Sequence record: OQ828465.1
DNA length: 64,000 nucleotides
Direction: 5' to 3' (one strand)
The notes under the pieces: generated by a model
Databases searched by the model: none
Told to the model about the DNA's origin: nothing
The model's input: only the letters and a program-made list of their open reading frames with translations
Shown here: piece by piece, positions 43,026-55,320 of the stretch
Position numbering within the stretch: position 1 is the first letter of the stretch
How the letters are laid out: each line of letters starts with the position of its first letter
Program-made: the position numbers and the translations under genes

Positions 43026-43811
43026 ATGCATCGTCGAACTATGTACAGATTTAGCTTATCATATTCCAATAAACTTATTAATAATAACCCACTTGGTTTT
43101 ACAGTCGAGAGTTATCTTGAAAGCTGGTTTGACAAACTCAAGTGTCGATTAACTAAAGATTATACCAAAAGCCATGCTATTCATTTTCGTGGAAGTTGGA
43201 AATACTTTGAATTAGATCAATATAAGAACAATGCTTTCTTCAATCAATATCACATGGTGATGCAGTCACTAGAAGATCTAGAAAGAAAGATTAGTGGAGT
43301 GATTGGGTTAAGTATCAAAATCACTAAACCAGAACGACATTTATTTCATGTTCTATTTAACCATGAAAAGATTATTCTATCCCCTAATGGCATTATCTTT
43401 GATGTACGTGTTCCAAAACACACCGTGATAGCTAATCCTGATGTTATGGGATATCGTAATTGCAATGTAGATAAACTGACGGTATTTGGCGAGCGCTCTA
43501 AAGTTAACTATGTGGTTAAACAAGTACGTTATGCCTTAAAGCAGAAAGGGGTGACAACTGTTGCCAATAGTTCAATGACTCGTTTTTTATATGACCTATT
43601 TCATCCAAAATACAGAGACAATCAAATTTATAACTACGGCATGACTATGTCTGATGTTTATGTAATGGCCGTATTCAAAAATGGGTATACGGAAATCTAT
43701 GGTAAAGATGTAGGTGAAATATTTGAAAGTCATACTCTAGATTTTCTAGAACGTGAATACATGATCTGTGGACAATATTTTCCTAAGCTATCCAGAGGGA
43801 TGCTAGTATGA
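43026..43811 (+). CDS. hypothetical protein, paralog of 42097..42969
   Basis: ATG 43026 after AGGA, downstream of terminator; CNVDKLTVFGERSKVNYVVKQV. Confidence 0.85.
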   Translation: MHRRTMYRFSLSYSNKLINNNPLGFTVESYLESWFDKLKCRLTKDYTKSHAIHFRGSWKYFELDQYKNNAFFNQYHMVMQSLEDLERKISGVIGLSIKITKPERHLFHVLFNHEKIILSPNGIIFDVRVPKHTVIANPDVMGYRNCNVDKLTVFGERSKVNYVVKQVRYALKQKGVTTVANSSMTRFLYDLFHPKYRDNQIYNYGMTMSDVYVMAVFKNGYTEIYGKDVGEIFESHTLDFLEREYMICGQYFPKLSRGMLV

Positions 43812-45334
43812 TTATAGAAACCTTATTGCAATATTACGCCATGTTCATCGATATCTCTCAGAAGAATATGGTTATGGGTGGAGCTATCGGAATGGCAATT
43901 GGTGGTTTATTCTGGACCACTCTAAGAGGCTTACCAAGTAAACTAGCTATGTTCGCATTAAATCAGTTTACAGTTAGTCTACATATTACCAACATGGGTA
44001 ATGGGCTGAACGAGAAGAACTTTGATTGTTTCATGGAATGGTATATTAAGCAGCCATTAGCTGGATTTAATCGACGTTTTTCAACTAATGTTGATGAGCA
44101 AAGTTATAGTGCAACTAAACAGAAAATTGGTGTTGGTTTTGGCTTACATTTCTTTCTGTTTAAAGGTAGGTTATTCTGGTTTGTAAAAGCACGCCGGGAT
44201 AGTCAAAATGCCAGTCGAGATCAAATGGATATTACTATCCGTGGATTATCTAGGAGTAGTAAACTAATTATTGATTTAGTAGATGCTTACCATTGGCGCC
44301 CAAATGAAAGGGGTCTGACTATTTCACATTGGGATGGTAACCGTTGGGGCAATGAGATTGAAGTTACTAAACGCGATATCAACACGGTGATTTTGCGTAA
44401 AGAGATCAAAGAAGAATTCCTTAATAAGATTGAAGAATTCTATTCTGATCGGAAATGGTACGATGATCGTGGACTACCCTATAAATTCACTTGTGTTCTA
44501 ACAGGTCCTCCTGGTACTGGTAAAACCTCAATCAGTAAAGCGATTGCCTCACATTTTAATAAAAATGTTAGTGCACTGTCATTAGCCTCTATGACCAATG
44601 ATAGTCTTAGGCGGGCATTTACTACACTACCTAAAGGTAATATTCTTCTAATTGAAGATTTCGATGATACCCCGGCAGTTAAAGATCGTGTTTTAAATGA
44701 TCCTGTAAAACTAGATAAAGAGATAAAGGAATTAGAGAGGAAATATTCTTTTATTGATTTAATTGAAAAATATCCGTCTGCATGGGTTGATCTTAAAGAT
44801 GACTATGAAGGATACTCTGTAGTTGGGTTTAATGACACCATCTATATCTTTGATGAAAATAGCGATGATCAAGGTTTTGGGATAAGTGCTTATGCTATGG
44901 CTGAACTGGGTGTTTCAAAATGGGCCGATGAAAAAGATCCATTATTTACCACAATTCGCCGATGGTGGAAATTAAAGAAGTGCATGAAGAATGGAATCAC
45001 GTATGAACAACCAGCTAGCGGATTAACTTTGTCAGCTCTATTAAATGGGCTAGATGGCATTGTTCCACTAGATGAGACTATGACCATTCTAACTACAAAC
45101 CATCCTGAGAATATTGATAAAGCACTTCTAAGGAAAGGTCGCGTTGATTACATGGTGGAGATTCCATATCTACGAGATCAAGAGGTTAGGGAGTATATTA
45201 AACTAATGTTCCCTGACTTCGATATTCCTGAAGATATCAGATTTAAAGATCAGCCAGGGTGTGATGTAATGGCGGCTTTTTCAAATAACCGTTATGACCC
45301 TAATGCTTTTATCAATAGTCTATTGAAATATTAA
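43808..45334 (+). CDS. BCS1-like membrane-anchored AAA+ ATPase
   Basis: N-terminal TM, BCS1_N-like middle region, WYDDRGLPYK, GPPGTGKT, LLIEDFD, LTLSALLNGLDG, TTNHPENIDKALLRKGRVD. Confidence 0.88.
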   Translation: MIIETLLQYYAMFIDISQKNMVMGGAIGMAIGGLFWTTLRGLPSKLAMFALNQFTVSLHITNMGNGLNEKNFDCFMEWYIKQPLAGFNRRFSTNVDEQSYSATKQKIGVGFGLHFFLFKGRLFWFVKARRDSQNASRDQMDITIRGLSRSSKLIIDLVDAYHWRPNERGLTISHWDGNRWGNEIEVTKRDINTVILRKEIKEEFLNKIEEFYSDRKWYDDRGLPYKFTCVLTGPPGTGKTSISKAIASHFNKNVSALSLASMTNDSLRRAFTTLPKGNILLIEDFDDTPAVKDRVLNDPVKLDKEIKELERKYSFIDLIEKYPSAWVDLKDDYEGYSVVGFNDTIYIFDENSDDQGFGISAYAMAELGVSKWADEKDPLFTTIRRWWKLKKCMKNGITYEQPASGLTLSALLNGLDGIVPLDETMTILTTNHPENIDKALLRKGRVDYMVEIPYLRDQEVREYIKLMFPDFDIPEDIRFKDQPGCDVMAAFSNNRYDPNAFINSLLKY

Positions 45335-46505: not shown

Positions 46506-46919
46506 ATGGCTAGTCAACTTATCGTAGTTGATTTACAAAATCCTAGAAATAAACATATATACAGTGAACTAACTCATGAACATCCTAGAACAATAACATC
46601 ACATCTAGTTGAAGAATTAGATGATTTTGATGTTCATCAATATTCATACCAAGCGGAGTATAAGTCTGGGATTGATCTTAGATTAATATTCTTTTGGGAT
46701 GGACCATACACTGAACCAAGAGAAGAAGGTTATGAACCAACTGATCTAGAGAAAAAGTGTGTGAAGTTGTGTAGGCAATATGAGGTTGCGATTAACGGGC
46801 AATTATCTGTAGTTGATCACTCTCGGTTCCGGACGGTGTGTACCTTCAGATCAGATAATAGTTTACCAACAACTTTAGACTGGATTCATAAAGAACCCCC
46901 ATCTAAAGAGGTTGTGTAA
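46506..46919 (+). CDS. hypothetical protein
   Basis: 137 aa ORF. Confidence 0.8.
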   Translation: MASQLIVVDLQNPRNKHIYSELTHEHPRTITSHLVEELDDFDVHQYSYQAEYKSGIDLRLIFFWDGPYTEPREEGYEPTDLEKKCVKLCRQYEVAINGQLSVVDHSRFRTVCTFRSDNSLPTTLDWIHKEPPSKEVV

Positions 46920-46948
46920 AAAATAGTAAAAGAAATACACTATTCTAT

Positions 46949-47050
46949 GTAGTTCCTTTACGATTGCTCTTTTATCTTAGTTTCAGTTTTGCTGAAGAAG
47001 TACCAATGAGATACCCTCCCCTGATCGGGGAGGGTTTTTGACATCTAAGA
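46949..47050 (+). ncRNA. candidate late sRNA, 5' end complementary to the nrdB RBS
   Basis: TATGTAG at 46946, U-rich non-coding body, terminator ccctcccc-tgatc-ggggaggg-ttttt. Confidence 0.45.
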
Positions 47051-47060
47051 GGAAAATATA

Positions 47061-47441
47061 ATGTGCAAACAACATCGTGTAGTATCTATGAAAGTTACAT
47101 GCACGCAAGCTCGCTATCCGATCGGTCTGCGCGATCTCGGATTTGATAATGCTGCTGATGCTCGGCAATATCTACTAGATGTCGTTGAGTACAATATGGA
47201 TCGTCTCCACCCGCAACATGCTAATACATTCCAGCTACAAAATCTACAAGACGGGTTCGTAGTATCCTACGATATCGAAAAAGATGGATCCGTTTATCTT
47301 CGGTTAACACTGGCGGCTGTAGCTTATCAATCAATCGATCTTGAGTTGGGGGTTACCGTTAAAGAAAATGAAGGGATCAGTGTTGTAATCAAAAATTGGA
47401 TCAATGGTGATTATACTGCGGGGAACAAATACTTGCAGTAA
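47061..47441 (+). CDS. hypothetical protein
   Basis: 126 aa, GAGGA RBS. Confidence 0.8.
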   Translation: MCKQHRVVSMKVTCTQARYPIGLRDLGFDNAADARQYLLDVVEYNMDRLHPQHANTFQLQNLQDGFVVSYDIEKDGSVYLRLTLAAVAYQSIDLELGVTVKENEGISVVIKNWINGDYTAGNKYLQ

Positions 47442-47449
47442 TACCATAT

Positions 47450-47570
47450 GTAAAGAATACCCAAATCGGGATCTCCCGGACTATCTCCCTTCAGCGTTCC
47501 CGTCCGCAAATGAAGGTGCCGCCGAGATCCCACCTATTGATAATGCCCTCCCTTCGGGGAGGGCTTTATT
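47450..47570 (+). ncRNA. candidate structured GC-rich ncRNA
   Basis: TAC-N14-TATGTA promoter as for tRNAs, nested stems 47468-47531, UUCG terminator 47545-47564. Confidence 0.6.
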
Positions 47571-47607
47571 TCGCTTAAGCCTATTTATTTTATTATAAGG
47601 AGTGAAA

Positions 47608-48339
47608 ATGACATATATCGTAAATGATGGTAAAGTCATGATTGCAGACTGCCTATTAATTGAGCGGAATAATGCAACTGATAGCATTGGGCGACTTCCA
47701 GTATTAGATAACGGTTATATTGATCTAACTGCTAAAGCTGAAGGTGTAGATGTATATTACAATGATTGCCACAAGATAATTTTTCATCCGACTGTTACTT
47801 GGCAAGGCAAACGTGTTAAAACTATGGCTTTTGCTGGAACTATAGATAATGTTTATGATCTATTGAATGCCCTTACCGCAGGTGTTGATTTAGCTGATTG
47901 GTTTAAAGTTGAAGTAAATATCTTGCCAGTCATAGAACGCAGGTTGTTTAATGGTAATACTTCTATGATGTTCACTATGGAGAATGGTGACATATATACA
48001 GTTATTCTTAAAGACATGGGTATCAACATCACCAAGAAAGATTGGGCTCATTTGGGTAGTGGTGTAGATGCAGTTAATAGTGTACTTGAGTTTATCCCTA
48101 ATTGTAATGATAATGGATCAACCAAACTAACTGCACTTGAAGCATTTGCTATTGCATGTGCACATACTACTACTGTAAGTCGTAAATTTGATTATTACAT
48201 CCATGCTACAGGTGAGTACAAGCAAAATCAAGAACTATCAACTAAACAACTAAAATGGATACTAGCGCGCATTCAAAAGCGGATGGATCTTACCCGCATT
48301 TTCAATGACCGCGAATATGCCAATAACATATGGGGTTGA
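47608..48339 (+). CDS. Ntn-hydrolase (HslV/proteasome beta-like) protein
   Basis: M-T start; TYIVNDGKVMIAD, MAFAG, HLGSG, ALEAFAIA. Confidence 0.55.
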   Translation: MTYIVNDGKVMIADCLLIERNNATDSIGRLPVLDNGYIDLTAKAEGVDVYYNDCHKIIFHPTVTWQGKRVKTMAFAGTIDNVYDLLNALTAGVDLADWFKVEVNILPVIERRLFNGNTSMMFTMENGDIYTVILKDMGINITKKDWAHLGSGVDAVNSVLEFIPNCNDNGSTKLTALEAFAIACAHTTTVSRKFDYYIHATGEYKQNQELSTKQLKWILARIQKRMDLTRIFNDREYANNIWG

Positions 48340-48860
48340 TTTGTATGAGTAATTCTAATATGGATATGCTATATTACACTAATGTAAATTGGGAGCAATA
48401 TTTTCATCATGTGAAACAACGTGCAGATGATACTGTTAAAGTAATGTATAAACCTGAATATGAAGATCTTATTGATGAAGCATGTAGGCCATTAATTAAA
48501 TGGTTTAATCAATTTACCAATGTTGCAACTATTTATTGCTGTTCAGGCCATGTTGATGAAGAAACTGGTGGTAGCCCTGGATACATTAGTCTTTTATTTA
48601 AAGATACCAATGCAGAGAATTCTGCAATGCGTTTATTGCGTGAAGCAATGTGTAAGGGGCGTGAGTGTAAGATCCCATTCGAAATTGAACTGGGGGCTTA
48701 TTTCGGGCATCTACATGAGACCATTGATCAGAATCACTGGGTCGCCAATCTAGTCATCCGCACCAATAGCTACAAACGTAAAAATACGTATGATCGCTAT
48801 TGGCATCGTCTTTACAATATCATAACAACATGTAATACTGAGGGTTTATACACCGTCTAA
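48330..48860 (+). CDS. TYW3-like domain protein
   Basis: LIDEACRPLIKWFN...TIYCCSGH...PGYISLLF. Confidence 0.6.
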   Translation: MGLICMSNSNMDMLYYTNVNWEQYFHHVKQRADDTVKVMYKPEYEDLIDEACRPLIKWFNQFTNVATIYCCSGHVDEETGGSPGYISLLFKDTNAENSAMRLLREAMCKGRECKIPFEIELGAYFGHLHETIDQNHWVANLVIRTNSYKRKNTYDRYWHRLYNIITTCNTEGLYTV

Positions 48861-50159: not shown

Positions 50160-50239
50160 TAGTATTTCCTCAGTTTGATTAAATAGATAATTTACAAATG
50201 GCAATCCGCCTAGTTACATACTAGATAGCTGTAAGTATT

Positions 50240-53118: not shown

Positions 53119-53194
<76 letters not shown>

Positions 53195-55244: not shown

Positions 55245-55320
<76 letters not shown>

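Follow-up and report, generated by a model that had tools for sequence, protein, structure and literature searches.

The window analyzed here, 64,000 nt of sequence record OQ828465.1, is by sequence comparison a phiKZ-type phage genome: in a megablast search, positions 46900-47700 match 46 phiKZ-group Pseudomonas phages at 99-100% identity (PaZh_1 and PA_ZH1, 100%; phiKZ itself, 99.4%). A window position x corresponds to position x + 215721 of phiKZ NC_004629. The RNA element that we describe sits in the 166-nt gap between PHIKZ288 and PHIKZ289 (Table 1). We are all but certain that it is the product of a transcription unit, P130-T119, in which a middle-class promoter starts transcription at 47450/47451, the transcript contains a four-helix rod, and an intrinsic terminator ends it at 47571 to give a 120-nt non-coding RNA, with some read-through into PHIKZ289; the rod is the conserved core of a family of RNAs that occupy one and the same position in the genomes of Pseudomonas phiKZ-like jumbo phages.

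Immediately 5′ of this unit is another short one. It consists of the early promoter P129 (TSS 262671) and the terminator T118 (262760), and has been published as an 89-nt "5′UTR-derived" ncRNA candidate of PHIKZ288. Further upstream, the 508-aa PHIKZ286 has a Walker-A motif, GPPGTGKT, and is probably an AAA+-type ATPase.

Table 1. Features of the P130-T119 locus and of related loci (window positions, unless a contig is named)
Feature	Position	Strand	Sequence or basis
PHIKZ286	43808-45334	+	ORF
P129-T118 unit	46950-47039	+	early promoter and terminator
T118	47013-47040		CCCTCCCCTGATCGGGGAGGG and T-run
PHIKZ288	47061-47441		ORF list and annotation
Middle-class promoter P130	47424-47450	+	AACAAATACT, 13-nt spacer, TATG
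Single-stranded 5′ leader	47450-47467	+	GUAAAGAAUACCCAAAUC; unpaired in MFE and centroid folds
Rod-like core, four helices	47468-47531	+	MFE fold; RNAalifold; covariation
P1	47468-47475 with 47524-47531		GGGATCTC/GAGATCCC
P2	47477-47479 with 47519-47521		CGG/CCG
Asymmetric internal loop (8-by-2)	47480-47487 opposite 47517-47518		ACUAUCUC opposite UG
P3	47488-47493 with 47511-47516		CCTTCA/TGAAGG
P4	47494-47496 with 47505-47507		GCG/CGC
Apical loop	47497-47504		UUCCCGUC
Conserved single-stranded 3′ tail and linker	47532-47544	+	ACCUAUU, then A/U-rich linker to terminator
Intrinsic terminator T119	47545-47571	+	GCCCUCCC-UUCG-GGGAGGGC, then UUUAUUU; 3′ end of 120-nt RNA
Ribosome-binding site and PHIKZ289	47597-48339	+	AAGGAG, start codon 47608; first gene reached by read-through
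PHIKZ289	47608-48339	+	ORF list and annotation
PHIKZ290	48330-48860	+	
Long form, KEN49	L003 1140-1430		
Long form, 201phi2-1	L053 2437-2900		
Long form, Viktualia	L052 537-1015		
Long form	L055 7192-7660		
Long form	L058 7235-7705		
Small ORF	L008 1271-1504		end overlaps hydrolase start (ATGA)
Small ORF	L009 1334-1504		end overlaps hydrolase start (ATGA)
Small ORF	L010 1286-1504		end overlaps hydrolase start (ATGA)

Promoter, mapped transcript, and terminator

The original prediction proposed a GC-rich, rod-like RNA driven by a "tRNA-type" promoter, TAC-N14-TATGTA, at 47430-47450. The motif is present, although that range spans only its TAC...TATG part: AACAAATACT occupies 47424-47433 and is followed by 13 bases and then TATGTA (47447-47452), with TATG at 47447-47450 and TAC at -20 to -18 counted from G47450. 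The exact pattern occurs eight times in the window against 1.31 expected, a count reached in 0 of 100 shuffles; when one mismatch is allowed the motif is not enriched in the window (43 vs 36), so the information is carried by the exact motif only. The seven other exact copies lie on the minus strand between 50215 and 56978, and half of the eight stand directly 5′ of a tRNA gene (tRNA-Thr, tRNA-Asn, tRNA-Asp, and tRNA-Leu). The eight aligned sites give the consensus AAAATAATACT-N13-TATGTA, and the predicted promoter type turns out to be the published phiKZ middle-promoter motif, AAanTTACc centered near -24 plus a TATG whose G is +1 (PMC4666361). P130 matches this motif both in the upstream element and in the start-site TATG, where a start has been mapped. 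The copy at 50215-50237 is the published P132. ARAGORN identifies seven tRNAs elsewhere in the window, with tRNA-Asn present twice (53119-53194 and 55245-55320), and no tRNA or tmRNA at 47430-47570.

ONT-cappable-seq of phiKZ on PAO1 places the P130 TSS at 263172(+), which is window position 47451, and assigns it to the class "middle promoter" (Putzeys et al. 2024; bioRxiv 10.1101/2023.10.13.562163). The positional accuracy of the method is ~2 nt (Putzeys et al. 2024), and the start site is G47450 or T47451. In the same data the T119 TTS is at 263292, window position 47571 (class "intrinsic", ARNold energy -18.6), and TU198 is a unit of 120 nt with no gene inside, whose longest reads reach 264292 (bioRxiv 10.1101/2023.10.13.562163) and therefore cover PHIKZ289. 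Table S7 of that work lists an ncRNA candidate at 263172-263292(+), ended by T119, 120 nt long, assigned to PHIKZ289, "5′UTR-derived", with an RNAfold value of -46.60 and a blank validation column (bioRxiv 10.1101/2023.10.13.562163). The 120-nt transcript is thus already known and catalogued, and since it stands in Table S7 we do not present the RNA as a new discovery. Its TSS and TTS both lie 5′ of the first gene and the product is shorter than 250 nt, as in other 5′UTR-derived ncRNAs. Earlier dRNA-seq and Grad-seq studies, both at 10 min, make no mention of the RNA, which agrees with its expression from a middle promoter.

An independent terminator scan identifies GCCCTCCC-TTCG-GGGAGGGC at 47545-47564, followed by TTTATTT. 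The stem has 8 bp, seven of them G-C, is capped by a UUCG loop, and leads into the mapped 3′ end; it also carries compensatory changes in T2P and other phages. The original prediction of a UUCG terminator is therefore confirmed by both the scan and the mapped TTS, and that of a discrete RNA of about 120 nt by the published start, end, and listing. The prediction had staked itself on a transcript starting near 47450 and on a conserved structure; the start is mapped, and the structure, as described below, is conserved.

T119 is partly read through into PHIKZ289, as seen in the reads that extend to 264292. The next downstream start is P131 at 264056, a late promoter for PHIKZ290 (bioRxiv 10.1101/2023.10.13.562163); PHIKZ289 has no promoter of its own, and its expression therefore depends on read-through of T119. 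These observations would suit a cis-acting leader, in which binding of a ligand, a protein, or the transcribing phage RNA polymerase to the rod sets the level of read-through into PHIKZ289, either by riboswitch-like attenuation or by put-like processive antitermination, with the 120-nt RNA as a by-product. Promoter, conserved structured domain, intrinsic terminator, and ribosome-binding site follow one another in the classical order of an attenuator, the P130 reads run through PHIKZ289, and most phiKZ 5′UTR terminators have been described as working in two modes, short and read-through (Putzeys et al. 2024). We consider a cis-acting leader possible, if rather doubtful, in light of the comparative evidence presented below.

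The four-helix rod and its conservation

The four nested stems of the original prediction are exactly those of the MFE and centroid folds of 47450-47575. With the terminator included this segment folds at -46.6 kcal/mol (z = -4.1; 0 of 200 shuffles as good), and the rod without the terminator has a z-score of -2.75, with 3 of 200 shuffles equally good, a moderate result when taken alone. On one sequence, the fold statistics go no further than moderate; covariation and the published transcript ends provide the strong support. The G+C content is 0.55-0.58 over the rod versus 0.25-0.45 in the flanks, which agrees with the predicted contrast in composition.

Several other identities for the element were considered. 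The sole + strand ORF, 47404-47598, begins inside PHIKZ288 and extends through the terminator. Overlapping ORFs of both strands are not kept in frame, which argues against a protein-coding function, and core lengths in relatives (80, 81, 82, and 85 nt) differ by 1-5 nt, differences that are not multiples of three; the absence of a credible + strand ORF had been predicted. In Rfam 15, only tRNAs reach the gathering score in the window, and the best local match has 19 bits against thresholds of at least 50. A known RNA family is likewise unsupported at gathering and permissive thresholds in the relatives, with no match over the element in five of them and none in KEN49; the matches in Viktualia are all sub-threshold, at 19 bits or less. 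A repeat or mobile element is not indicated either, as the rod is single-copy in every record and only the terminator type recurs elsewhere; the family covariance model finds one copy in the 64-kb window and gives a weak hit in Viktualia.

Comparison within the genus gives weak evidence for a conserved structure. The T2P group is 88% identical over 211 nt; its flanks diverge and its linker is scrambled, and the 64-nt rod differs at only two positions, neither of them paired. Three other isolates have single changes in the rod, all at unpaired positions. Searching with tblastn for homologues of PHIKZ289 leads to RVTF4 (74.5% amino-acid identity) and to Psa21 and D6 (39%), and 5′ of all three homologues we find TAC-N14-TAT(G/A), a short leader, a four-helix rod, a tail, a terminator, and a ribosome-binding site. 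A pattern composed of three shared motifs identified four more lineages of uncultivated jumbo phages in IMG/VR.

In a MAFFT alignment that is blind to structure (11 distinct sequences, with the structure written by hand), 92.2% of cells pair, compared with 36-45% in controls that slide the 3′ partners 1-3 columns, and both sides have changed in 13 of the 21 pairs. RNAalifold gives the same P1-P4 unaided. The covariation score of this alignment is 0.549 versus 0.21 in shuffles, a statistic that overstates significance because the sequence set is small and partly composed of close kin (~16 distinct sequences in roughly ten lineages). In a covariance-model alignment of 14 sequences, 95.7% of cells pair and both sides have changed in 16 of the 21 pairs; given that a model-based alignment leans towards structure and that the sequences are related, we regard the slid-partner control as the fair comparison. 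G-U pairs are found on the + strand only, in agreement with an RNA of that orientation. Compensatory changes in distant phages thus uphold the predicted structure.

Certain unpaired bases of the rod and tail are invariant in 16 sequences: AUCUC on the 5′ side of the 8-by-2 loop and UG on its 3′ side, the apical CCCGUC, and CnCCUA in the 3′ tail. Even phages whose PHIKZ289 homologues are 25-40% identical or absent keep the loop bases unchanged. Invariant unpaired bases in a covarying scaffold resemble aptamers, a point in favor of the cis-acting leader. The leader is shorter in most relatives, ending in (G/A)ACGAAY, and the linker varies in sequence yet is A/U-rich throughout the family. Just 3′ of the terminator (e.g., L008 1236-1258), the stretch CUUUAUGCCGUCU(U/C)AAGGA, which runs to the ribosome-binding site, is near-invariant in the non-phiKZ members. 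This stretch repeats the CCGUC of the apical loop, and the leader often has a complementary GACG; no consistent pairing was found.

This pattern bears on whether the RNA has a specific function at all. A stable 5′ stem-loop and terminator might simply protect or punctuate transcripts and be conserved through neighboring signals; many leaky terminators punctuate phiKZ operons, the similar unit P129-T118 lies just 5′, and the single-sequence z-score of the rod (-2.75) is modest. However, a protective hairpin would not be expected to keep loops of 5-6 nt while every helix changes, at 25-40% protein identity, and the T2P rod is far better conserved than its flanks. We therefore consider a lack of specific function very improbable.

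The same single-stranded motifs, which are C/U-rich, conserved, and complementary to GGAG-type sequences, could be read as the seeds of a base-pairing small RNA, in which AUCUCCC, CCCGUC, or CCACCUAUU would pair with an RNA of the host or phage (a purine-rich ribosome-binding region, for instance) and alter its translation or stability. Such an RNA would have its own promoter and terminator and an A/U-rich stretch 5′ of the terminator hairpin, as this one does, and other 5′UTR-derived RNAs of phiKZ and 201phi2-1 have been proposed as regulators (PMC11512511; Putzeys et al. 2024). With respect to Hfq-type features, the A/U-rich linker is present and the terminator tail is interrupted (UUUAUUU; UUUAUG in relatives). 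Against this reading, the invariant stretches measure just 5-6 nt, and a seed would not need the full rod geometry, with its helix lengths and 8-by-2 loop, that is kept here; pairing in cis with the downstream ribosome-binding site is not conserved, the site being AAGGAG in phiKZ versus AGGAC in Psa21. A base-pairing small RNA is in our judgment unlikely, though less so than an RNA with no specific function. The apical loop may be complementary to 16S rRNA, but we make no use of this because 7-mers match by chance too easily.

Family spread, long form, and downstream genes

Judging from the sequence searches, at least ten lineages of Pseudomonas jumbo phages have the rod at this point of the genome, with members in 201phi2-1, Phabio, Psa21, D6, RVTF4, Viktualia, and uncultivated phages. 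Gene gp423 of 201phi2-1 is a homologue of PHIKZ287, which makes the locus positionally orthologous. A blastn query with the Viktualia leader matches 201phi2-1 at 75% identity over ~420 nt and Phabio over the core only, and a second pattern identified two further uncultivated contigs. When 241 million metagenome records and 185,579 species genomes were scanned with a pattern, the only hits were one phage contig known already and chance matches, of which those scored with the model reached at most 14 bits. A bacterial origin or wider spread was likewise considered, and in bacterial genomes the strict three-motif pattern gave only chance matches.

The family includes short and long forms. Phabio has the short form, whereas 201phi2-1, Viktualia, and two uncultivated contigs have a long form of ~470 nt, composed of the promoter, ~100 nt of 5′ hairpins, the core, an extension of 250-280 nt, and the terminator. 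The extension has its own invariant blocks (AACUUUCGG...CCGAAGC, AGCUGGCCAGCACACA, and CAGAUUAAACC), shows some covariation, and has no Rfam match. Core and terminator are also separated by a homologous extension in KEN49, a member of the phiKZ group; the blocks that it shares are TAATGAnCTTnCGGT, TATTGAnGG, which follows at exactly 34 nt, AACCAA, and ATTAAACCCC. These 280 nt look like an alternative long allele homologous to that of Viktualia and 201phi2-1 and not like a clean insertion; a group I intron was considered, but Rfam gives no hit and the flanks, too, are unlike those of phiKZ. Scanning IMG/VR with an extension pattern gave no match. The annotations of Viktualia and KEN49 place small hypothetical proteins in parts of the long form, and the annotated start of 201phi2-1 gp425 lies inside it. 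The corresponding segment of 201phi2-1 is 287055-287540; the published ONT-cappable-seq screen of that phage retained units shorter than 250 nt only. The two forms bear differently on the cis-acting leader: in short forms the terminator begins 13-16 nt after P1, as a leader that controls termination would suggest, whereas in long forms the core is ~270 nt from the terminator.

The genes that follow the unit differ between lineages. PHIKZ289 is probably an N-terminal-threonine hydrolase with a proteasome-beta/HslV-like Ntn fold, a reading based on a PHROG match ("peptidase HslV family", E = 5e-5) and on fold comparison. Its AlphaFold2 model (pLDDT 71) has 20S proteasome subunits or HslV as all of its top Foldseek PDB hits, with E-values down to 7e-6 and TM-scores of 0.4-0.5, and sequence searches of Pfam and PDB gave no match. 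The homologues, which are confined to some jumbo phages, all begin M-T-Y-I-V. RVTF4, Psa21, D6, and the uncultivated phages related to them have a small ORF (56-77 aa, two predicted transmembrane segments) that separates the hydrolase gene from the RNA; phiKZ has no such ORF and has an A/T-rich spacer instead. In Viktualia the hydrolase is encoded by the third gene, and in 201phi2-1 and Phabio it is absent and a small basic protein comes first. The first downstream ORF thus varies by lineage, none of these ORFs having an assigned function, and a PHIKZ289-like Ntn hydrolase follows in most lineages; a strict linkage to PHIKZ289, which held in nine of nine IMG/VR loci, is broken by 201phi2-1 and Phabio. 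Given these differences, the unit of promoter, RNA, and terminator is more constant than the genes that follow it, and the apparent incoherence of those genes, in which the proteasome-like gene can be absent and the first small ORFs differ, would argue against the cis-acting leader. PHIKZ290, which adjoins the tRNA cluster, has a weak sub-threshold Pfam match to TYW3, a tRNA-modifying methyltransferase (E = 0.0016; 18 bits vs a cutoff of 27).

Proposed role and comparison with known systems

Thermodynamic prediction also bears on the leader. When the 3′ arm of the terminator is blocked in folding, the rod stays intact and no alternative helix forms in ten of ten lineages; a mutually exclusive antiterminator is thus predicted in none of the ten, and rod and terminator are predicted to be independent modules. 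Riboswitch-type switching had been considered because the 3′ strand of P3 can be matched by eye to 4-6 bases of the terminator 5′ arm in several lineages, and constrained folding gives no such helix in any of them. Of the properties of a riboswitch or attenuator, the structured domain is present and mutually exclusive folds are not predicted, and the element matches no riboswitch or leader family in Rfam. A put-like action on the polymerase, which needs no switch, would escape the objections concerning antiterminator, distance, and gene coherence.

Because no antiterminator is predicted and the downstream genes vary, we read the RNA itself as the conserved product. The evidence leans towards a binding platform over a structural switch, and we tentatively favor, at somewhat less than even confidence, the hypothesis that the RNA is a selected product that acts in trans by binding a conserved partner. 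Of the functions suggested in the original prediction, protein decoy and base-pairing RNA, either may still apply. P130 starts the RNA at 47450/47451, and the RNA folds as a four-helix rod and ends at T119. The rigid rod would display the invariant unpaired AUCUC/UG, CCCGUC, and CnCCUA as a recognition surface, bound by a conserved partner that would most likely be a host or phage protein or protein complex, and the RNA would serve as a scaffold or decoy in the middle phase of infection. T119 would have two roles, releasing the RNA and throttling expression of the downstream genes, with a fraction of polymerases passing into PHIKZ289. The same anatomy would suit a purely cis role in read-through, as the RNA always heads an operon, and the invariant loops could equally contact a small ligand or RNA polymerase or form a short kissing-loop pairing. 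We prefer the trans reading because the RNA persists while genes change, the rod geometry is conserved, the loops are invariant, and a large multi-domain relative exists. That relative also suggests a broader view, to which we give about the same limited credence as to the cis-acting leader: the rod may be the autonomous core of an undescribed structured-RNA family, the full form of which would be a 470-nt multi-domain RNA such as that of 201phi2-1, Viktualia, KEN49, and two uncultivated phages. It would have a specific trans function, for instance as a catalytic RNA, as part of a ribonucleoprotein, or in modifying the non-canonical RNA polymerase of the phage, with phiKZ keeping a minimal version. 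On that reading, the family would belong to nucleus-forming Pseudomonas jumbo phages.

To our knowledge, very few non-coding RNAs of lytic phages have a known function. The phiKZ-like phages transcribe their genomes inside a protein-walled nucleus, and control at the RNA level is for this reason likely to matter. The rod defines which loop and helix mutants to compare and poses a choice between trans and cis action; as a prioritized, structurally defined family it is a useful lead.

The P130-T119 RNA is one of 17 5′UTR-derived ncRNA candidates reported in phiKZ (Putzeys et al. 2024), among which it stands out by its compensatory fold, three invariant loop motifs, kept position, and larger relative. 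It resembles the northern-validated RNAs 5′ of PHIKZ221 and PHIKZ302 in having a start site and a terminator in the 5′UTR and both short and read-through transcripts. For the PHIKZ289 candidate, Putzeys et al. (2024) report conservation within a genus only and give no northern, structure analysis, or function. In the literature that we consulted, the covariation-backed structure, the invariant motifs, the spread across several genera (at least ten lineages), and the long form appear to be new. The 201phi2-1 sRNA005/phiKZ gp182 sRNA is likewise 5′UTR-derived and conserved in position and predicted fold in several genera, and differs in its locus, a tail protein gene, and in its sequence and structure (PMC11512511); the single hit of the rod model in the window is not the gp182 sRNA, the region of which lies outside the window. 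Transcription-terminating riboswitches and attenuators likewise have a promoter-proximal structured domain with invariant unpaired bases, followed by a terminator and a ribosome-binding site; unlike them, the rod RNA has no predicted competing antiterminator and no Rfam match, and its downstream genes do not appear coherent. The put RNAs of phage HK022 are composed of two stem-loops, occur twice per genome, and act on host RNA polymerase, binding the transcribing enzyme without a switch. The rod RNA is similar to them as a short structured RNA just 3′ of a phage promoter and 5′ of terminators, and differs in being one rod in one copy, made by a non-canonical phage polymerase; a relation in sequence is not expected. 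The 6S RNA, of ~180 nt, is rod-like with a large central bubble and binds a protein machine; Rfam 6S models do not match the window, and what the rod RNA shares with it is the architecture of a rod with an internal loop.
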